Positions 1,493-14,015 of a stretch of DNA of 14,015 nucleotides are shown here, one piece after another. The stretch's first letter is position 1. Each line of letters begins with the position of its first letter. The stretch is from Octopus sinensis (taxonomy: Eukaryota). The position numbers and the translations under genes were made by a program. The notes under the pieces are model-generated. The model did not search any database and had not been told where the DNA came from. It worked only from the letters and a program-made list of their open reading frames with translations. The DNA lies in contig NW_021826032.1 of the NCBI RefSeq assembly GCF_006345805.1, positions 1-14,015 on the forward strand, read 5' to 3'.

Positions 1493-1580
1493 TAGAAATA
1501 ATGAAATTTGTTCTTTAACAAAATATCAATTAGTTTTCTTTTTTTTAACTTCTATTTTGAACTATTTTTTTTCTTTTATT

Positions 1581-2255
1581 CTTTTATTTGTTTCAGTCAT
1601 TTGACTGCGGCCATGCTGGAGCACCACCTTTAGTCGAGCAAATCGACCCCTGGACTTATTCTTTGTAAGCCTAGTACTTATTCTATCGGGGATATAAACA
1701 CACCAGCATAGGTTATCAAATGATGGTGGGGGAACAAACACAGGCACACATACACCCACACCAACACACCATATGTATATATGTATATATATATATATAT
1801 ATATAATATATAATAATATATTATAATATATATATATATATAATATATATATATATAAGACAGGCTTCTTTCAGTTTCTTATTTCTGCATTACCCACTAG
1901 GGGCTAAACAGAGGGGACAAACGAGGACAGACAAACGGATTAAGTCGATTACATCAACCCCAGTGCATAACTGGTACTTAATTATCGACCCCGAAAGGAT
2001 TGGACGCAAAGTTGATCTCGGCGGAATTTGAACACAGAACGTAACGGTAGACGAAATACCACTAAGCATTTTTCGCCCGGTGTTCTAACATTTCTGCCAG
2101 CTTGCCTTCTTTCAGTTTCTCACTACCAAATCCACTCATAAGGATTTGGTTGGCCCGAGGAAGACAACACTTGCCCAAGGTACCACACAGTGGGAATGAA
2201 CCCGGAACCATGTGGTTGGTAAGCAAGCTACTCACCACACAGCCACTCCTGCACC
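1581..2255 (-). mobile_element. tRNA-derived SINE family A (internal deletion, interrupted by SINE-B)
   Basis: Head revcomp CCACACAGCCACTCCTGCACC at the right, tail CTTTTA(T/C)TTGTTTCAGTCATTTGACTGCGGCC at the left. Lacks the TCTCTTTTGCCGAACCGCTAAGTGACG segment of full copies. Internal (TA)n. Confidence 0.9.
1880..2105 (-). mobile_element. tRNA-derived SINE family B nested in SINE-A
   Basis: Minus strand GGCAAGCTGGCAGAAATGTTAG...GTTCAAATTCCGCCGAG (A/B boxes). Flanked by 15-bp direct repeat CTTCTTTCAGTTTCT (1865-1879, 2106-2120). Confidence 0.9.
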
Positions 2256-2510
2256 TATAATTTATTTACACTAGTAATTACCATTATTATCAATAGGAAA
2301 TAACGAAAGAGATGTCAGCTTAATGTAAACTTCCGTACTAAAACAAATAAATTACAAAAAACAGCAAAAAACTCAGTGTGAAGTGGGCAAATAATATTTC
2401 ATGCATGTGGGTTTTATCATGCGGTCCTCTCCCAGTTGGAAATGGTACGATGTGGCCCCAGTTGGCATGAAGTGGCCCATCCCTGATATAGAGTATACGG
2501 TAATCTCTCT

Positions 2511-2724
2511 CTTTTACTTGTTTCGGTCAGTTGAATGCGGCCATGCTGGAGCACCGTCTTTAGTCGAGCAACTCAACCCCGGGACTTATTCTTTGTAAGC
2601 CCAGTACTTATTCTATCAGTATTCTTTTTGCCGAACCGCTAAGTGACAGGGACATAAACACACCAGCATTGGTTGTCAAGCGATGTTGTGGGGACAACAG
2701 ACACACAAACATACATATATATAT
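2511..2724 (-). mobile_element. SINE family A, 3' half
   Basis: Matches the tail half of the full copies at 5900-6312 and 7803-8205; ends at the internal microsatellite. Confidence 0.85.
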
Positions 2725-2770
2725 AACCCATGCTAGCATGGAGAACGGACGTTAAACGATGATGATAATA
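2725..2770 (+). mobile_element. 3' tail of SINE family C
   Basis: AACCCATGCTAGCATGGAGAACGGACGTTAAACGATGATGAT; the same tail occurs at 4875-4920 and 12129-12173. Confidence 0.6.
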
Positions 2771-2872
2771 TGTGTGTGTGTGTGTGTGTGTGTGTATACA
2801 TCACATGCCCACACATATGCATAGCTAATGTACTTCTACATACCTTTATATCTATCTATATATATATATATA

Positions 2873-3510
2873 TGAGCAAAACGCCCCCCATCCAATGGAC
2901 GGTGCTGAGTTGTCAAACATTTAAACCAAATTTTCTCAAAACAATTTGTCCGACCGTCCCATAGGTCTCCCCTTTGAGAAACACTGATTTAACCTAAATT
3001 TGAGACACCAGCAAAAGAAATAAAGATAGATTTTTTTTCTATTCCAAAGAAAAACGATTTTATTCACACAAATATGCAACCGAAGAGTTAAAATACCAGT
3101 AATGATAAGGCTGTTGACTGGGAGAACACAAACATTGTTTAAACAGTAAGCTTGGCAGGAAAGAAACGTGCCTTTAAGCAGTACAAAAACACACAAAAAA
3201 TGGAAGGTGCAGTGATGGACAGGTTGACGGAAGAAAAGCAAGACAAAAAACGATGCATGCAAATGGGTTAGCTGGAGGTAAATCTAGATGGAAAAGCATG
3301 ATGTACTTGCACGTACAAATGCACGTTCCCACGGCTTTATCAATCGCATTCTCACCTGGAATTGATTTTTGTAATTTTTTAAAGATTTATACACGCCCTG
3401 ATACCGTCGGTATCTACATATCAAATTTGAGCGCAATTGGATGGAGGATGCCCGAGATCCTAGAAGACACACAGACAGACAGACAGACAGAATGGATTTT
3501 ATATAATGGA
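2873..3510 (-). mobile_element. Non-autonomous Helitron/DINE-like element
   Basis: Minus-strand 5' A|TCCATTATATAAAATCC followed by a (TCTG)n microsatellite. Hairpin CCATCC-AAT-GGACGG (2888-2902) near the other end. Terminal CTAG appears mutated (plus-strand TGAG). Confidence 0.55.
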
Positions 3511-3760
3511 TATAACCTTCCCCTCGACTTATGACCATAACCCTAACCACAAAAACCTAAATATAGAAACAAATAAAAAATCGATTTTCGGACATTGGAC
3601 AGCTGCACATACGATAGCTATGGCAGCATCTAGCAATGCGGCCCCTCAGACCCGAACATTCACTACCTGGGTCTGAGGAAGGTAATGGACCCTAATGTCA
3701 AATGCTTTGCAAAAGTTGAACATATTCAAGATGCTGTGCATTGTAATCACAAGATATACT

Positions 3761-3936
3761 CTTTTACTTGTTTCAGTCATTTGACTGCGGCCATGCTGGA
3801 GCACCGCCTTTAATCGAGCAAATCGACCCTGGGACTTATTCTTTGTAAGCCCAGTACTTATTCTATCGGGGATATAAACACACCAGCATAGGTTATCAAA
3901 TGATGGTGGGGGAACAAACACAGGCACACATACACC

Positions 3937-3986
<50 letters not shown>

Positions 3987-4407
3987 TATATATATATATA
4001 TATATATAAGACAGGCTTCTTTCAGTTTCTTATTTCTGCATTACCCACTAGGGGCTAAACAGAGGGGACAAACGAGGACAGACAAATGGATTAAGTCGAT
4101 TACATCAACCCCAGTGCATAACTGGTACTTAATTTATCGACCCCGAAAGGATGAGACGCAAAGTTGATCTCGGCGGAATTTGAACACAGAACGTAACGGT
4201 AGACGAAATACCATTAAGCATTTTTCGCCCGGTGTTCTAACATTTCTGCCAGCTTGCCTTCTTTCAGTTTCTCACTACCAAATCCACTCATAAGGATTTG
4301 GTTGGCCCGAGGAAGACAACACTTGCCCAAGGTACCACACAGTGGGAATGAACCCGAAACCATGTGGTTGGTAAGCAAGCTACTCACCACACAGCCACTC
4401 CTGCACC
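3761..4407 (-). mobile_element. SINE family A at the duplication junction (chimeric), interrupted by SINE-B
   Basis: Left ~90 bp shares variants with the 5907 copy; the remainder shares the deletion and nested SINE-B of the 1581 copy. Confidence 0.85.
4031..4257 (-). mobile_element. SINE family B (duplicate of 1880-2105)
   Basis: Same sequence and same 15-bp TSD (4016-4030, 4258-4272). Confidence 0.9.
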
Positions 4408-4635
4408 TATAATTTATTTACACTAGTAATTACCATTATTATCAATAGGAAATAACGAAAGATGTCAGCTTAATGTAAACTTCCGTACTAAAACAAATAA
4501 ATTACAAAAAACAGCAAAAAACTCAGTGTGAAGTGGGCAAGTAATATTTCATGCATGTGGGTTTTATCATGCGGTCCTCTCCCAGTTGGAAATGGTACGA
4601 TGTGGCCCCAGTTGGCATGAAGTGGCCCATCCCTG
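4408..4635 (+). mobile_element. Orphan right end of the hAT element (duplicated)
   Basis: GTGGCCCATCCCTG followed by ATATAGAG (4636-4643); no left end inside the duplicated unit. Confidence 0.85.
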
Positions 4636-4660
4636 ATATAGAGTATACGGTAATCTCTCT

Positions 4661-4874
4661 CTTTTACTTGTTTCGGTCAGTTGAATGCGGCCATGCTGGA
4701 GCACCGTCTTTAGTCGAGCAACTCAACCCCGGGACTTATTCTTTTGTAAGCCCAGTACTTATTCTATCAGTCTCTTTTGCCGAACCGCTAAGTGACAGGG
4801 ACATAAACACACCAGCATTGGTTGTCAAGCGATGTTGTGGGGACAAACAGACACACAAACATACATATATATAT
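4661..4874 (-). mobile_element. SINE family A, 3' half (duplicate of 2511-2724)
   Basis: Collinear duplicate. Confidence 0.85.
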
Positions 4875-5016
4875 AACCCATGCTAGCATGGAGAACGGAC
4901 GTTAAACGATGATGATGATATGTGTGTGTGTGTGTGTATATACATCACATGCCCACACATATGCATAGCTAATGTACTTCTACATACCTTTATATCTATC
5001 TATATATATATATATA

Positions 5017-5647
5017 TGAGCAAAACGCCCCCCATCCAATGGACGGTGCTGAGTTGTCAAACATTTAAACCAAATTTTCTCAAAACAATTTGTCCGACCG
5101 TCCCATAGGTCTCCCCTTTGAGAAACACTGATTTAACCTAAATTTGAGACACCAGCAAAAGAAATAAAGATAGATTTTTTTTCTATTCCAAAGAAAAACG
5201 ATTTTATTCACACAAATATGCAACCGAAGAGTTTAAAATACCAGTAATGATAAGGCTGTTGACTGGGAGAACACAAACATTGTTTAAACAGTAAGCTTGG
5301 CAGGAAAGAAATGTGCCTTTAAGCAGTACAAAAACAACAAAAAATGGAAGGTGCAGTGATGGACAGGTTGACGGAAGAAAAGCAAGACAAAAAACGATGC
5401 ATGCAAATGGGTTAGCTGGAGGTAAATCTAGATGAGAAAAGCATGATGTACTTGCACGTACAAATGCACGTTCCCACGGCTTTATCAATCGCATTCTCAC
5501 CTGGAATTGATTTTTGTAATTTTTTAAAGATTTATACACGCCCTGATACCGTCGGTATCTACATATCAAATTTGAGCGCAATTGGATGGAGGATGCCGGA
5601 GATCCTAGAAGACACACAGACAGACAGAATGGATTTTATATAATGGA
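5017..5647 (-). mobile_element. Helitron/DINE-like element (duplicate of 2873-3510)
   Basis: Collinear duplicate with the same termini. Confidence 0.55.
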
Positions 5648-5899
5648 TATAACCTTCCCCTCGAATTATGACCATAACCCTAACCACAAAAACCTAAATA
5701 TAGAAACAAATAAAAAATCGATTTTCGGACATTGGACAGCTGCACATACGATAGCTATGGCAGCATCTAGCAATGCAGGCCTCCCTCAGACCCAAACATT
5801 CACTACCTGGGTCTGAGGAAGGTAATGGACCCTAATGTCAAATGCTTTGCAAAAGTTGAACTATTCAAGATGCTGTGCATTGTAATCACAAGATATACT

Positions 5900-6312
5900 C
5901 TTTACTCTTTTACTTGTTTCAGTTATTTTGACTGTGGCCATGCTGGAGCACCGCCTTTAGTCGAGCAAATCGACCCCGGGACTTATTCTTTGTAAGCCCA
6001 GTACTTATTCATTCGGTCTCTTTTGCCGAACCGCTAAGTGACGGGGACGTAAACACACCAGCATCAGTTGTCAAGCAATGCTAGGGGGACAAACAGACAC
6101 ACAAACATATACATACACATACATATATATATATATATATACATATATACGACAGGCTTCTTTCAGTTTCCGTCTACCAAATCCACTCACAAGGCATTGG
6201 TCGGCCCGGGGATTAAGCAGAAGACACTTGCCCAAGATGCCACACAGTGGGACTGAACCCGGAACCATGTGGTTGGTTAGCAAGCTACTTACCACACAGC
6301 CACTCCTGCGCC
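5900..6312 (-). mobile_element. Full-length SINE family A
   Basis: Minus strand GGCGCAGGAGTGGCTGTGTGG (A box) ... GGTTCAGTCCC (B box), internal (TA)n/(TG)n, tail ACAAGTAAAAGAGTAAAG. Confidence 0.92.
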
Positions 6313-7011
6313 TATATATAGCAAAAAAATTTTAAAACCATTCAAAATTCACCAAGTTCCTCAAAAAAACCATCTACCTCAATCCAAGAACGTGACTGAA
6401 GATTAAAAATCTATTTTCATTTGCACTTTTCGCACAGGAAGTAGTTTGTTTATTGTATGTATGCAGATTTTCATTTCTATTAATTTTTACATTAATTTTA
6501 GATTGTATTCTTGTTTACAGTACAATAGAGTGTTTTTCACATCATGTACAATAATTATGGATTAAATTTTTGTGTTTTATATTTTTATAATCCATCTGAA
6601 TGAAAATTGTGTTCTAAAATATAAATCTGACATATGACTAGATCGACTTGCCACCTGTCGTCTGTAAGCTGAGGAGGTGTATATATAAGTTACAATATAT
6701 GGATTTAGGTAATCCGGTAGTATTCATAAATAAGTTCCTCTGTCATAGAACAAACCATAAAGAGTGTATAGTAATAGACATGACAAGAGAACAAGGAGAA
6801 TATGAAGATATGACAGAGAAGAATGAAGAATTTTGTTTAGCAATAAACAAGGAATAATCATTAGAAATTGGTTTGGGGACGATAGCAACTAATTTGTAGT
6901 GATTTTTCAATGTTTATTATTAAATAAAATTCATCTTTTTTCCACCATTTATATATATATATAAATCCGTGGGGTGATTATAATCAAAATAAGCAACAAG
7001 AATGACTCCGG

Positions 7012-7104
7012 TAATTTGGTACGATCGTTTCGTACTACACCATTTTATTAAATGTTGTAAGTATTACAACAGTTTTAAAATGCTGAGCACTCATCAGCAA
7101 ATTA
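7012..7104 (-). ncRNA. Type I hammerhead ribozyme motif (P1 left arm)
   Basis: Minus strand: TAATTTG-CTGATGA-GTGCT...AGTAC-GAAA-C-GATC-G-TA-C-CAAATTA. Core intact, G10.1-C11.1 pair, helix II extended with TGTTGTAA/TTACAACA, helix I 7 bp with one bulged C. Confidence 0.8.
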
Positions 7105-7233
7105 TAGAGGCTTTCCATTAATATAAAAATTTTCATATCAAGTGGCAACATTATAGATAAGGTAGATACATAGACAAAGATGTGGATTTAAATTTTAAGA
7201 ACATTTGAAGTAGTGGAGCCCAGAAAACCTCTA

Positions 7234-7326
7234 TAATTTGCTGATGAGTGCTCAGCATTTTAAAACTGTGGTAATACTTACAATATTTAATAAAATGATG
7301 TAGTATGAAACGATCGTACCAAATTA
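7234..7326 (+). ncRNA. Type I hammerhead ribozyme motif (P1 right arm)
   Basis: CTGATGA 7241-7247, GAAA 7307-7310, C-GATC-G-TA 7311-7318. Four substitutions relative to the left arm, including a G-U pair at 10.1-11.1. Confidence 0.7.
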
Positions 7327-7386
7327 CCGGAGTCATTCTTGTTGCTTATTTTGATTATATATACACACACACACGCATATATATAA

Positions 7387-7784: not shown

Positions 7785-7802
7785 ATTATATATATATATA
7801 TA

Positions 7803-8205
7803 GGCGCAGGAGTGGCTGTGTGGTAAGTAGCTTGCTAACCAACCACATGGTTCTGGGTTCAGTCCCACTGCGTGGCATCTTGGGCAAGTGTCTTCTGCTA
7901 TAGCCCTGGGCCGACCAATGCCTTGTTAGTGGATTTGGTAGACGGAAACTGAAAGAAGCCTGTCGTATATATATATATATATGTATGTGTGTGCATTTGT
8001 GTGTCTGTGTTTGTCCCCCCTAGCATTGCTTGACAACCGATGCTGGTGTGTTTACGTCCCCTTAACTTAGCAGTTCGGCAAAAAGATACCGATAGAATGA
8101 GTACTGGGCTTACAAAGAATAAGTCCCGGGGTCGATTTGCTCGACTAAAGGCGGTGCTCCAGCATGGCTGCAGTCAAAATGACTGAAACAAGTAAAAGAA
8201 AAAGA
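7803..8205 (+). mobile_element. Full-length SINE family A
   Basis: GGCGCAGGAGTGGCTGTGTGG...GGTTCAGTCCC head, internal microsatellite, tail GACTGAAACAAGTAAAAGA. Confidence 0.92.
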
Positions 8206-8769: not shown

Positions 8770-9443
8770 TATAAGCGAGAAAGAAGCAACAAGAATGGAT
8801 AGGTTTTTAGTACGATCGTTTCATACAAGGACAGGTTTTATTAAAAGTTGCAAAGTAATGTGATTAATATGGCAAACACCTAATCATATAACAAGGATTG
8901 ATACCTACCTCATTGTGTTCAACATTGTAAAATTTATCGCCTGTGAATATGAAATTCTCTCCATTTCTCTGGAAATTTACATCTACACCATTGGAATCTG
9001 TGCATATATACAAAGGATTAATTCACCCTCTCTGTAATGCTAATAAGCAGGAATTGAGACCCACCTCGTTGTAATTAACAATGGATAAATTTGTCTTCTG
9101 TGAGTATATAATCCCTCATCATATCTATGAAATTCATATGGATTAGGTCACCTTCTCTGTGATGCTATCAAAACTTTTTAAAATTCTGTGATAAGACTGT
9201 ACATCATCTTTAAAGAACTTTAATGAACTTTAGAAATCTGTTTAATTATCTACATTACTTCATGAGTATAGCCTCAAACACTAGGATGTCTAGAGAACTT
9301 ACATGTATTTTAGCTGATGAGTACGGGACTCGTTTATATGCTGTAATCTTTGCAACTTTTAATAAAACCTGTCCTTGTATGAAACGATCGTACTAAAAAC
9401 CTATCCATTCTTGTTGCTTCTTTCTCGCTTATAATCACCCCAC
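8770..9443 (+). mobile_element. Penelope-like pLTR remnant, inverted-repeat form (element P3, related to P1)
   Basis: Perfect 86-bp inverted arms 8770-8855 and 9348-9433. One-sided extension ATCACCCCAC is the reverse complement of the P1 extension. Shared blocks with P1: AAGCAACAAGAATG, GTACGATCGTTTC, TTTTATTAAA, ACTCATCAGC. Confidence 0.7.
9308..9398 (+). ncRNA. Type I hammerhead ribozyme motif (P3)
   Basis: TTTTAG(9308-13)-CTGATGA-GTACGGGAC...GTCCTTGTAT-GAAA(9381-84)-C-GATC-G-TA-CTAAAA(9393-98). Perfect 6-bp helix I; predicted cleavage after A9392. Confidence 0.82.
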
Positions 9444-9576: not shown

Positions 9577-9614
<38 letters not shown>

Positions 9615-9615
9615 T
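9546..9615. repeat. (TA)n microsatellite
   Basis: Interrupted TA run. Confidence 0.95.
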
Positions 9616-9616
9616 G

Positions 9617-9910
9617 TTTTACTTTTTTCAGTCATTAGGCTGTGGCCATGCTGGAGTACCACCTTAGAGAAGTTTTTTTTAATGAATTGACCACAAGGCT
9701 TATTTTTTTTTTAAAGCCTAGTTTTTATTCTATCGGTCTCTTTTTTGCCAAATTGTTAAGTTCCAAGGATGTAAACACACCAACACCAGTTGTCTATCTG
9801 TGGTGGGGGACAAATACGCACAAGGATATACGCAATTTTTTTTCAGTTTCCATCAACCAAATCCACTCAAAAGGCTTTGGTTGGCCTGGGGCTATGGTAG
9901 AAGACACCTG
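9617..9910 (-). mobile_element. Older, diverged SINE family A copy lacking its head
   Basis: Recognisable GGCCATGCTGGAG, TATCGGTCTC, GTAAACACACCA and TTCAGTTTCC...CAAATCCACTC blocks. Ends at GAAGACAC where MITE sequence begins. Confidence 0.75.
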
Positions 9911-9915
9911 TACAA

Positions 9916-10029
9916 GGGACATAAATTGTGACTAAGGCTTAGTGGAAGATTTTAATTCAGAATGTATGAAAACAAGTCATTGGTACTACAGAGCCAGAGG
10001 CGGTTTCAGCCAGATTTATATCGAAAGTG
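9916..10029 (+). mobile_element. 5'-truncated, diverged piggyBac-type MITE copy
   Basis: Homologous to the 3' part of 10054-10274; degenerate right end followed by TTAA (10030-10033). Confidence 0.65.
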
Positions 10030-10053
10030 TTAAAAATATCATGGTCACTTTAA

Positions 10054-10274
10054 CCCTTTTGTTACCATATTTATTTTGAGATGCTCTGTGTTTCTTTCAA
10101 TTACTTTAAATATAACAAAGAACTTAGTAAAATAACTTAGTTATCATTAAGCTAGTGTTAGGAACATAAATTGTGACTAAGGTTTGGTGGAAGGTTTTAA
10201 TTCAGAACTTATGAAAACAAGACATTTGTACTATAGAGCAAGAGGTGGTTTCAGCCAGGTTAGTATCAAAAGGG
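10054..10274 (+). mobile_element. Complete 221-bp piggyBac-type MITE
   Basis: TTAA|CCCTTTTGTTACCA ... TAGTATCAAAAGGG|TTAA: 14-bp TIR (12/14) and TTAA on both sides. Confidence 0.85.
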
Positions 10275-10305
10275 TTAAGAATTGTTTCTCTATTATATAT
10301 TTTAA

Positions 10306-12029
10306 CCCTTTCATTACCATATTACTATTGAGATGCTCTGTGTTTCTTTCAATTACTTTAAATATAACAAAGAATTTAGTAAAATAACTTAGTTATCATT
10401 AAGCTAGTGTTAGGAACATAAATTGTGACTAAGGTTTGGTGGAAGATTTTAATTCAAAACTTATGAAAACAAGACGTTTGTACTACAGAGCCAGAGGTGG
10501 TTTCAGCCAGGTTGGTATCAAAAGGTTAAATATAACAAAGAATTTAATAAAATAACTTAGTTATCATTAAGATAGTGTTAGGAATATAAATTGTGACTAA
10601 GGTTTGGTGGAAGATTTTAATTCAAAACTTATGAAAACAAGACGTTTGTACTACAGAGCCAGAGGTGGTTTCAGCCAGGTTGGTATCAAAAGAGTAAAAT
10701 ATAACAAGAATTTAGTAAAATAACTTAGTTATCATTAAGCTAGTGTTAGGAACATAAATTGTGACTAAGGTTTGGTGGAAGATTTTAATTCAAAACTTAT
10801 GAAAACAAGACGTTTGTACTACAGAGCCAGAGGTGGTTTCAGCAGGTTGGTATCAAAAGAGTAAAATATAACAAAGAATTTAGTAAAATAACTTGGTTAT
10901 CATTAAGCTAGTGTTAGGAACATAAATTGTGACTAAGGTTTGGTGGAAGATTTTAATTCAAAACTTATGAAAACAAGACGTTTGTACTACAGAGCCAGAG
11001 GTGGTTTCAGCCAGGTTGGTATCAAAAGGTTAAATATAACAAAGAATTTAATAAAATAACTTAGTTATCATTAAGATAGTGTTAGGAACATAAATTGTGA
11101 CTAAGGTTTGGTGGAAGATTTTAATTCAAAACTTATGAAAACAAGACGTTTGTACTACAGAGCCAGAGGTGGTTTCAGCCAGGTTGGTATCAAAAGAGTA
11201 AAATATAACAAAGAATTTAGTAAAATAACTTAGTTATCATTAAGCTAGTGTTAGGAACATAAATTGTGACTAAGGTTTGGTGGAAGATTTTAATTCAAAA
11301 CTTATGAAAACAAGACGTTTGTACTACAGAGCCAGAGGTGGTTTCAGCCAGGTTGGTATCAAAAGAGTAAAATATAACAAAGAATTTAGTAAAATAACTT
11401 GGTTATCATTAAGCTAGTGTTAGGAACATAAATTGTGACTAAGGTTTGGTGGAAGATTTTAATTCAAAACTTATGAAAACAAGACGTTTGTACTACAGAG
11501 CCAGAGGTGGTTTCAGCCAGGTTGGTATCAAAAGAGTAAAATATAACAAGAATTTAGTAAAATAACTTAGTTATCATTAAGCTAGTGTTAGGAACATAAA
11601 TTGTGACTAAGTTTGGTGGAAGATTTTAATTCAAAACTTATGAAAACAAGACGTTTGTACTACAGAGCCAGAGGTGGTTTCAGCCAGGTTGGTATCAAAA
11701 GAGTAAAATATAACAAAGAATTTAGTAAAATAACTTGGTTATCATTAAGCTAGTGTTAGGAACATAAATTGTGACTAAGGTTTGGTGGAAGATTTTAATT
11801 CAAAACTTATGAAAACAAGACGTTTGTACTACAGAGCCAGAGGTGGTTTCAGCCAGGTTGGTATCAAAAGGTTAAATATAACAAAGAATTTAATAAAATA
11901 ACTTAGTTATCATTAAGATAGTGTTAGGAACATAATTGTGACTAAGGTTTGGTGGAAGATTTTAATTCAAAACTTATGAAAACAAGACATTTATACCACA
12001 GAGCCAGAGCCGGTTTAGTAACAGAAGGG
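10306..12029 (+). repeat. piggyBac-type MITE internally expanded into a 10-unit 168/169-bp tandem array
   Basis: TTAA|CCCTTTCATTAC at the left and GTAACAGAAGGG|TTAA at the right. The unit runs from an internal TTAA (10358) to the right-end TTAA (10526). Marker GGAA(C/T)ATAA recurs at 10413, 10581, 10749, 10917, 11085, 11254, 11423, 11591, 11759, 11927. Confidence 0.92.
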
Positions 12030-12040
12030 TTAAATCTTGG

Positions 12041-12482: not shown

Positions 12483-12869
12483 TGGCTGTGTGGTAAGTAG
12501 CTTGCTAACCAACCACATGGTTCCGGGTTCAGTCCCACTGTGTGGCATCTTGGGCAAGTGTCTTCTGCTATAGCCCCGGGCTGACCAATGCCTTGTGAGT
12601 GGATTTGGTAGACAGAAACTGAAAGAAGCCTGTCGTATATATGTATATATATATATATATATAATATGCATGTGTGTGTTTGTCCCCCTAGCATTGCTTG
12701 ACAACCGATGCTGGTGTGTTTACATCCCCGTCACTTAGCGGTTCGGCAAAAGAGACCGGTAGAATAAGTACTGGGCTTACAAAGAATAAGTTCCGGGGTC
12801 GATTTGCTCGACTAAAGGCGGTGCTCCAGCATGGCCACAGTCAAAATGACTGAAACAAGTAAAAGAGTA
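12483..12869 (+). mobile_element. SINE family A (first ~10 nt missing)
   Basis: TGGCTGTGTGGTAAG...GGTTCAGTCCC...GACTGAAACAAGTAAAAGAGTA. Confidence 0.92.
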
Positions 12870-12909
12870 TTCAAACGCATAAGAACAGACATGCTTATCT
12901 GCACACATA

Positions 12910-13179
12910 CTCTCTTTTTACTCTTTTACTTGTTTCAGTCATTTGACTGCGGCCATGCTGGAGCACCGCCTTTAATCGAGCAACTCGACCCCGGGACTTA
13001 TTCTTTTGTAAGCCCAGTACTTATTCGATCGGCCTTTTTTTTGCCGAACTGCTAAGTAACGGGGGACATAAACACACCAGCATCGGTTGTCAAGCAATGC
13101 TAGCGGGACAAACACAGACACACAAACACACACACATATATATATATATATCTATATCATCATCATCGTCCATATATAG

Positions 13180-13221
<42 letters not shown>

Positions 13222-13396
13222 CATATATACATATATACGACGGGCTTCTTTCAGTTTCCGTCTACCAAATCCACTCACAAGGCTTTGGTCGGCCCGAGAC
13301 TATAGTAGAAGACACTTGCCCCAGGTGCCACGCAGTGGGACTGAACCTGGAACCATGTGGTTTGTAAACAAGCTACTTACCACACAGCCACTCCTG
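12910..13396 (-). mobile_element. SINE family A with expanded internal microsatellite
   Basis: Reverse-complement copy lying tail-to-tail with 12483-12869. Confidence 0.92.
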
Positions 13397-13627
13397 ATGA
13401 TGATTGCTGATTCCTGATGGTGTCCGTTTCCATTACCCCACAACCCAGCCAGAAGGACATGTCCAGGATCTTTGTTCAAGAGCCTGGAAAATTGTAACTC
13501 CCACTTGAAAACAAGTAGAATCTGATGACAAGGATATCCGGCTGCTGAAAACTAAGTACTCTCATTTGATCTTGCGAACATGGGAAATGGAGACGTTAAA
13601 ACGATGCTGACAGCTGAGGGCCTTCAC

Positions 13628-14015
13628 ACCTGCATGTGTGCCTGCACTTCTGCTTGTGTGCCACTGTGTGTGCCTGCACTTCTGCTTGTGTGCCTGCACT
13701 TCTGCATATGCGCATGCACTTCTTGTGTGCATATGTACTTCCGTGTGCCATCTGCACTTCTGCATATGCACTTCCGTATGTGCAACTGCACTTCTGCATA
13801 TGCGTCTGTACTTCTGTGTGTGTGCCTGCACTTTTGCGTGTGTCTGCAACTGTGTGCATCTGCACTTCTGCACATGGTCCTGCACTTCTGTGCATGCTCC
13901 AGTACTTCTGTGCATGCTCTTGTACTTCTGTGCACGCACCTGCACTTCTGCGTATGTACCTACACTTCTGCAGCATGTGTCTGCACCTCTGCATGTACGC
14001 CTGCACTTCTGCATG
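13628..14015. repeat. Degenerate 20-bp minisatellite (consensus ~CCTGCACTTCTGCATGTGTG), runs off the window end
   Basis: The (C/T)ACTTC core recurs mostly every 20 bp (e.g. 13863, 13883, 13903, 13923, 13943, 13963). Confidence 0.9.

Follow-up and report, generated by a model that had tools for sequence, protein, structure and literature searches.

Introduction

The transition from transposon to satellite DNA is accepted in reviews as a general route, and such transitions are usually inferred from consensus sequences. The closest described systems include Xmix and Xstir of Xenopus, in which an internal segment of a T2-MITE was amplified (Hikosaka and Kawahara 2004, after the summaries in PMC6004289 and PMC12628747), and two elements that were proposed as satellite DNA seeds, DTC84 of the clam Donax trunculus and miDNA4 of Xenopus (PMC3879986 and PMC12628747; miDNA4 after Scalvenzi and Pollet, via the latter). 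Tandem amplification as a class of mechanism is also documented for other MITEs (PMC12628747), and a piggyBac-derived MITE of corals has the termini CCCTTT.../...AAAGGG (PMC2872659), in agreement with those of the element described below.

Here we analysed a window of 14,015 nt from Octopus sinensis, the whole stretch being positions 1 to 14,015 of contig NW_021826032.1. Our reading of the sequence is that one element in this window, M3, is probably a non-autonomous piggyBac-like MITE of about 225 bp plus TTAA flanks that carries an array of its own right-hand two thirds. The whole analysis of M3 rests on one assembled haplotype. We regard the locus as a tidy local case of a process for which frogs, clams, and corals have already provided examples; the literature searched yielded no account of a CCC...GGG piggyBac-type MITE whose repeat unit extends from an internal TTAA to a terminus.

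Results

Architecture of the array-bearing element

M3 is a single TTAA-flanked element (window 10302-12033) that consists of a 52-bp left arm, differing from the left arm of the upstream copy M2 by 5/52 substitutions in the alignment, and ten units (Table 1). TRF confirmed the head-to-tail arrangement of 168-bp monomers (168-bp period, 9.9 copies, 97% matches, score 3132, at 10360-12016), and when periods up to 2000 were allowed it listed the 168-bp array again and nothing else in this interval. The units run from the internal TTAA to the right-end ...GGG/TTAA and are 167-169 bp long; the last one, U10, is 162 bp long because of a 10-nt deletion. The left end of the element, CCCTTT..., starts at 10306, and the right end, ...AGAAGGG, is followed by the TTAA at 12030-12033. 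TRF, the boundaries, and the unit alignment agree with the original prediction, which had described a left TIR occurring once, ten tandem units reaching from an internal TTAA to the right-end TTAA, and two outer termini that are still recognisable.

Table 1. Positions of the features discussed, in window coordinates.
Feature	Position	Strand	Basis
M1, old 5'-truncated copy, unit positions ~55-169, degenerate right end GAAAGTG+TTAA	9915..10033	+	
M2, complete solo copy, 229 bp with both TTAAs counted, one unit; comparator	10050..10278	+	
Left TTAA flank of M3, putative target-site duplication	10302..10305	+	sequence reading
Unrepeated left arm of M3, including left TIR CCCTTTCATTAC (10306-10317)	10306..10357	+	single occurrence
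Internal TTAAAT, left-hand copy of the 6-nt direct repeat at the putative founding breakpoints	10358..10363	+	
U1, first unit, from the original internal TTAA; ancestral Y-like body; ends in an X junction	10358..10525	+	
U2	10526-10694		
U3	10695-10861		
U4	10862-11029		
U5	11030-11198		
U6	11199-11367		
U7	11368-11536		
U8	11537-11703		
U9	11704-11871		
U10	11872-12033		
First X-Y-Y2 trimer (U2, U3, U4), 504 bp	10526..11029	+	
Second X-Y-Y2 trimer (U5, U6, U7), 507 bp	11030..11536	+	
Y-Y2 dimer (U8, U9)	11537..11871	+	
Homogenised 5' part of U10, X type	11872..11987	+	0 substitutions/116 nt vs U5
Unhomogenised tail of U10 with degenerate right TIR (12018-12029; reverse complement CCCTTCTGTTAC)	11988..12029	+	
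Right flank, TTAA with two adjoining host bases (TTAAAT); right-hand copy of the 6-nt repeat	12030..12035	+	
SINE-like copies	1570-1700, 2500-2730, 3750-3870, 4650-4880, 5900-6320, 7795-8205, 9608-9917, 12483-12870, 12915-13400		

Assignment to the piggyBac superfamily

The superfamily is recognised by TTAA flanks and by TIRs of 12-19 bp that start with CCC and end with GGG (PMC5381638), and the element has these features. TTAA is present on both sides (at 10050 and 10275 in M2, at 10302 and 12030 in M3), its duplication on insertion being putative, and the TIRs are 12-16 bp long with the ends CCCTTT.../...AAGGG. In M2, the left TIR TTAACCCTTTTGTTAC matches the reverse complement of the right end, TTAACCCTTTTGATAC, at 15/16 positions with TTAA included and at 11/12 without it (CCCTTTTGTTAC/GTATCAAAAGGG). 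The TIRs of M3 (CCCTTTCATTAC/GTAACAGAAGGG) match at just 9/12 positions, and the element is probably immobile now. Kolobok, the other well-documented superfamily that targets TTAA, has the termini AG/AGGRR (PMC6004289), and membership in Kolobok or among the T2-MITEs was rejected because the termini here are CCC...GGG rather than purine-purine AG/AGGRR.

The element is small and lacks coding capacity, with a solo copy of 229 bp and a longest stop-free stretch of 68 codons. No ORF was found in it, no transposase-like ORF in the 14-kb window, and no match in Rfam. The original description of a TTAA-flanked, CCC...GGG-ended, non-coding element of piggyBac type was upheld by the termini, the TIRs, and the ORF check. 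One unit in M2 and ten in M3 sit between the same kind of piggyBac-like ends, which is the arrangement, core repeats in varying number between inverted-repeat arms, that characterises tandem-repeat-containing MITEs. As context only, families of piggyBac with recent activity appear in a recent repeat annotation of O. vulgaris (PMC13282606).

Two upstream copies of the element

The original prediction had missed M1 and M2, both of which bear on the possibility that two copies were fused at this locus. M1 is 86.6% identical to M2 over 119 nt (BLAST), and in the alignment it differs by 13-14% substitutions from M2 and from the array units alike. In M2, TTAA occurs at 10050, at 10106 (the internal site), and at 10275, and the distance from the internal to the right-end site is 169 bp, which led us to equate the monomer with the interval between the internal TTAA and the right end of the parent element.

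M1, M2, and M3 lie within 2.1 kb in the same orientation, separated by spacers of 16 nt (M1-M2) and 23 nt (M2-M3); M2 is found 24 bp upstream of M3. TRF lists a 252-bp period over the three copies. A 252-bp tandem duplication as their source was rejected since the two spacers are unrelated in sequence, and the copies represent three separate insertions. BLAST found no further copy of the element or of the monomer elsewhere in the 14-kb window.

M1 adjoins a truncated SINE-like repeat. The junction between the two (window 9905-9920, ...ACAAGG|GACATAAATTG) has a short microhomology with MITE sequence (TTAGGAACATAAATTG), and its make-up suggests that one deletion may have taken the 3' part of the SINE-like repeat and the 5' part of M1 together.

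Reconstruction of the founding junction

The right end of M2 reads ATCAAAAGGG-TTAA, and the internal site reads TTAA-ATATAAC. The two types of unit junction in the array, X and Y, can both be derived from AAAAGGGTTAAAT, read against the M2 right end ATCAAAAGGGTTAA. The X junction is AAAAGGG-TTAA-ATAT minus one G, and the Y junction is the same sequence with two substitutions, G>A and a T>A inside TTAA. Because both types derive from AAAAGGG-TTAA-ATAT, the first junction must have consisted of an intact right end, a single TTAA, and internal sequence.

The host bases that follow the right TTAA of M3 are AT, and the direct repeat at the breakpoints is the 6-nt TTAAAT (10358-10363 and 12030-12035), which extends 2 nt into the host flank. 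As the shared repeat in M3 is TTAAAT, the breakpoint cannot be pinned to TTAA, and the claim that TTAA microhomology defines the monomer is not upheld. The element and its 30-nt flanks contain about 15 6-mer pairs of this kind, TTAAAT among them. The terminal TTAA is involved in 2-7% of the 4-nt direct-repeat pairs that lie 50-400 bp apart in the element and flanks, and the coincidence of the founding breakpoint with a transposon end is mildly notable by this post hoc test.

Linked variants and their order

In the unit alignment, the X units (U2, U5, U10) start with AAAAGG|TTAA and carry AATTTAATAA and AAGATAG, the Y units (U3, U6, U8) start with AAAAGAG|TAAA and carry CTTAG, and the Y2 units (U4, U7, U9) are Y-like with CTTGG. 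TTAA is kept at three of the nine internal junctions, all of X type (10526, 11030, 11872), and is lost at the six Y-type junctions. From U2 to U10, the order is X-Y-Y2-X-Y-Y2-Y-Y2-X, in which the cycle X>Y>Y2>X is obeyed in 7/8 steps. The linked variants with their motifs, their order, and the loss of TTAA at Y junctions had all been predicted exactly so.

The further prediction of a higher-order repeat, a trimer with an added dimer, stands in part. The order is non-random, as only 15 of the 1680 ways to arrange three units each of X, Y, and Y2 are equally regular; U9 is identical to U4, U8 and U3 have a 1-nt A deletion in common, and the mean number of differences between units is 2.2 at lags 3 and 5 compared with 3.4-4.3 at other lags. 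On the other side, TRF reported no 504-bp period with long periods (up to 2000) allowed, and the evidence amounts to about 2.7 trimers with three informative substitution sites and two junction types. A monomer phylogeny, which had been proposed as a check, recovered the X clade by maximum likelihood (89/90) and left the remaining groups without resolution. The higher-order pattern is real but thin, and "incipient higher-order repeat" is a fair but generous label for it. The order fits one duplication of a 3-unit block together with a 2-unit gain or a 1-unit loss, and a 5-unit register for the right half of the array is as possible as the 3-unit reading.

Single-base deletions occur at ~10706, 10844, 11548, 11613, and 11935, all five in homopolymer runs (AAA, CC, GG). 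These could be homopolymer errors of long reads, and because of this signature the 1-nt deletions are unfit as evolutionary markers before a read check.

A chimeric last unit

U10 is a chimera of two parts. Its first 116 nt have 0 substitutions relative to U5, whereas 8 substitutions (19%) and a 10-nt deletion separate its last 42 aligned nt from the tail of every other unit (0/116 vs 8/42, Fisher p = 1.5e-5). At two sites, the U10 tail keeps the ancestral A/A that is also found in M1 and M2, whereas U1-U9 have the derived G/G. Five or six changes are private to the tail, which has none of the derived states seen in the array tails; one CpG site places the array tails with M2 and the U10 tail with M1. 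Its divergence equals that between separate family copies. U1, at the left edge of the array, lacks an unhomogenised stretch of this kind, and the two edges therefore differ in behaviour.

The distal part of the last unit can never be replaced by unequal exchange. For this reason, the last 42 nt of U10 and the right TIR drifted away from the homogenised units, and being beyond the reach of exchange they record the time since the founding event. The units differ by at most 1-3% among themselves, and it would be the present expansion alone that is recent. The sequence of the tail leaves two readings: either the first duplication may be old, dating from about the time of insertion with the inner units homogenised since, or the founding dimer may have been built from two different copies. 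The notion of an "incipient" satellite caught at its birth is contradicted by the tail, with its 19% and 10-nt deletion, while the remainder of U10 equals the X units.

Satellite status and monomer length

Nothing at the locus would mark the array as a true satellite; judged from this window, it is a single array of 1.7 kb with ten units. None of the seven array-derived ORFs was present in the protein collection by exact look-up, and a word-based protein search gave no candidate for the 46-aa array ORF. A 27-mer had 0 matches in a DNA scan of metagenome contigs. DNA scans with an 18-mer returned 12 metagenome, 0 viral, and 7 prokaryotic matches, all of which end at 18-23 nt by BLAST and are due to chance. 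In sum, no monomer copy was found in the metagenome, viral, prokaryotic, or protein collections searched.

For the near-chromatosome length remarked on earlier, no evidence of nucleosome phasing was found. The length of 168-169 bp results from the TTAA positions in the parent element, and the monomer has no roughly 10-bp WW periodicity as a nucleosome-positioning signal.

Other repeats in the window

The window is non-coding and full of AT microsatellites and SINE-like repeats, and the abundance of the latter together with the (AT)n richness gives it a cephalopod (octopus) look. One composite repeat of SINE-like type (...GTTTCAGTCATTTGACTGCGGCCATGCTGGAGCACC... and ...TTTCAGTTTCCGTCTACCAAATCCACTCACAAGG...) occurs in at least nine copies in both orientations (Table 1), each with an internal or adjoining AT/AC microsatellite. 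It had no match in Rfam, its 85-aa ORF had none in the word-based protein search, and a literature search with its sequence strings found nothing.

A tandem segmental duplication of about 2.15-2.2 kb occupies 1577-6010 (1577-3863 vs 3757-6010). Identity between its copies is 96% as a whole and reaches 99-100% in stretches of 285-300 nt, and the duplication is either very recent or a product of the assembly. The terminal inverted repeats of an element of about 660 bp at 8770-9433 are 86 nt long and perfect (100% complementary). This element has TA on both sides and long (TA)n tracts next to it, and its appearance is that of a young Tc1/mariner-type MITE or a foldback element. A second foldback-like structure is formed by the inverted repeat at 6958-7115 and 7223-7385, the arms of which are about 160 nt long, 93-96% complementary, and 107 nt apart. 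A degenerate minisatellite with a 20-nt period (CTGCATGTGTGCCTGCACTT) and about 64-88% identity between copies starts at 13560 and continues past the window end at 14015, with spurious 100-150-aa ORFs on the minus strand.

Discussion

How the array arose

We consider it probable, with due reserve, that the array arose by a microhomology-mediated duplication in situ followed by unequal exchange among the units. The founding event would have been a tandem duplication with its breakpoints in TTAAAT, at 10358 inside the element and at 12030 at the right end, where the TTAAAT copy would be made up of the TTAA flank and two host bases. Replication slippage, microhomology-mediated end joining, or unequal sister-chromatid exchange could each have produced the junction ...AAAAGGG-TTAA-ATAT..., in which an intact right end would be joined to internal sequence. 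The variant map suggests that the copy number may then have grown through unequal exchange or slippage between units, and mutations would have been propagated blockwise. The junction would have split into an X form, with one G lost and TTAA kept, and a Y form, with two substitutions and TTAA destroyed, while the X bodies acquired two marker substitutions and the Y2 bodies one. Duplication of an X-Y-Y2 block (~504 bp) may have come next, and a further gain of two units (Y-Y2) or loss of one (X) would give the present order. We prefer this account because TTAAAT includes host bases and because it is the simplest. Counted against it are the character states of the U10 tail, the unlike array edges, a breakpoint at a terminus that is expected in ~2-7% of cases, and the single haplotype. 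Given that the tail has no derived states in common with the array tails, an in-situ duplication must have followed the insertion almost at once.

A breakpoint exactly at the terminus hints that a transposase or a second copy was involved. A fusion or nesting of two copies is a serious rival, which we rate as rather unlikely. The founding dimer would then come from two separate MITE insertions and be expanded later by unequal exchange; the second copy may have inserted into the first at its internal TTAA, after which a duplicated left arm would have been lost, or a deletion may have run from the right-end TTAA of one copy to the internal TTAA of a neighbour in the same orientation. The locus has in fact gathered at least three insertions of the same orientation with unrelated spacers of 16 and 23 nt, and the U10 tail (19% plus the 10-nt deletion) has diverged as far as the old M1, while the array tails resemble M2. 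The left arm plus U1 (10302-10529) alone amounts to a full-length element that is 94% identical to M2, and the merging of adjacent MITEs into hybrid repeats has been proposed for Xstir (PMC12628747). However, such an origin calls for one more deletion, placed exactly at TTAA. The 5' parts of the units, including U1, are identical, which would require full homogenisation of the 5' parts later on without the tail, and the 2-nt extension of TTAAAT into the host fits an event in situ, although in this AT-rich DNA chance alone would give it in roughly 1 in 8 cases.

In piggyBac chemistry, the cut ends carry TTAA overhangs, and their rejoining gives back a single TTAA. A transposase of this type could have made the founding junction by cutting at the right-end and internal TTAA sites, for example on sister chromatids, with the self-complementary overhangs ligated afterwards, and the repeat phase would in that case be set by the target motif of the transposon itself. 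The junction is exactly a right end, one TTAA, and internal sequence, and a random microhomology event would reach a terminus in just ~2-7% of cases; precise excision of piggyBac is noted in PMC5381638. However, the sequence beside the internal TTAA (ATATAACAAAG) is unlike a TIR and gives no reason for cleavage there, the window has no transposase gene, and the TTAAAT repeat is simpler to explain as homology-driven repair. Attractive as this route is, we hold it to be improbable. Still a little less probable is its extension, in which a transposase made the founding junction and the X junctions (...AAAAGG/TTAA) act as right ends that mobilise sub-arrays of 1, 4, or 9 units; if true, it would give the target motif of a cut-and-paste transposon a direct route to set the phase of a satellite and to seed that satellite genome-wide. 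The least probable source of the copy number or variant order is a mis-assembled shorter tandem repeat. All five 1-nt indels of the array lie in homopolymers, suggesting imperfectly polished long reads, and the window has another near-perfect tandem duplication of 2.2 kb. An assembly artefact is nonetheless unlikely, given units that are non-identical with linked substitutions in a coherent order, an array that at 1.7 kb fits well within a single long read, and a diverged terminal unit and unique flanks that anchor both ends.

On the preferred account of duplication in situ and unequal exchange, the array, which has no evident function, is read as neutral repeat turnover inside a dead transposon. 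As it stands, this is ordinary turnover in a repeat-rich non-coding region. Its value lies in the readability of every step at a single locus, with the parent element alongside, a founding junction that can be reconstructed to the base, block duplications recorded by linked variants, and an unhomogenised edge unit that dates the origin relative to the expansion. If the monomer forms longer arrays elsewhere in the genome, the locus would serve well as an intermediate stage in teaching and in models of array growth.

Comparison with known systems

CMITE of Acropora corals (PMC2872659), which is piggyBac-derived, resembles the octopus element in its TTAA flanks, in its TIRs (13-14 bp, starting with CCCTTT and ending with AAAGGG), and in its tandem arrays, which were put down to replication slippage. 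In CMITE, however, the whole element of roughly 100 bp is repeated, sometimes with spacers, whereas here the portion from the internal TTAA to the right end alone is repeated and the left arm remains single. The two elements have no sequence similarity past the first six bases of the terminus.

DTC84 (PMC3879986) and miDNA4 (via PMC12628747) have core repeats between inverted-repeat arms in numbers that differ from copy to copy, with short direct repeats (microhomology) at the repeat borders that are proposed to drive gain and loss. They differ from the octopus element in belonging to other superfamilies (Tc1/mariner for miDNA4) or being unclassified, and in having repeats that are thought to be captured or internal, without a terminus. 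DTC84 has up to five repeats (PMC3879986) compared with ten in M3.

Xmix and Xstir match the octopus locus in that part of the internal sequence of a TTAA-targeting MITE is tandemly amplified, that solo MITEs, composites of MITE and array, and arrays are found side by side, and that adjacent copies are part of the proposed mechanism. Unlike the CCC...GGG element here, Xmix ends in AGGRR and is at present placed in Kolobok (PMC6004289), and Xstir is a large genome-wide repeat family, in contrast to the one array known here. A further difference is that the repeated segment of the octopus element takes in the right TIR itself.
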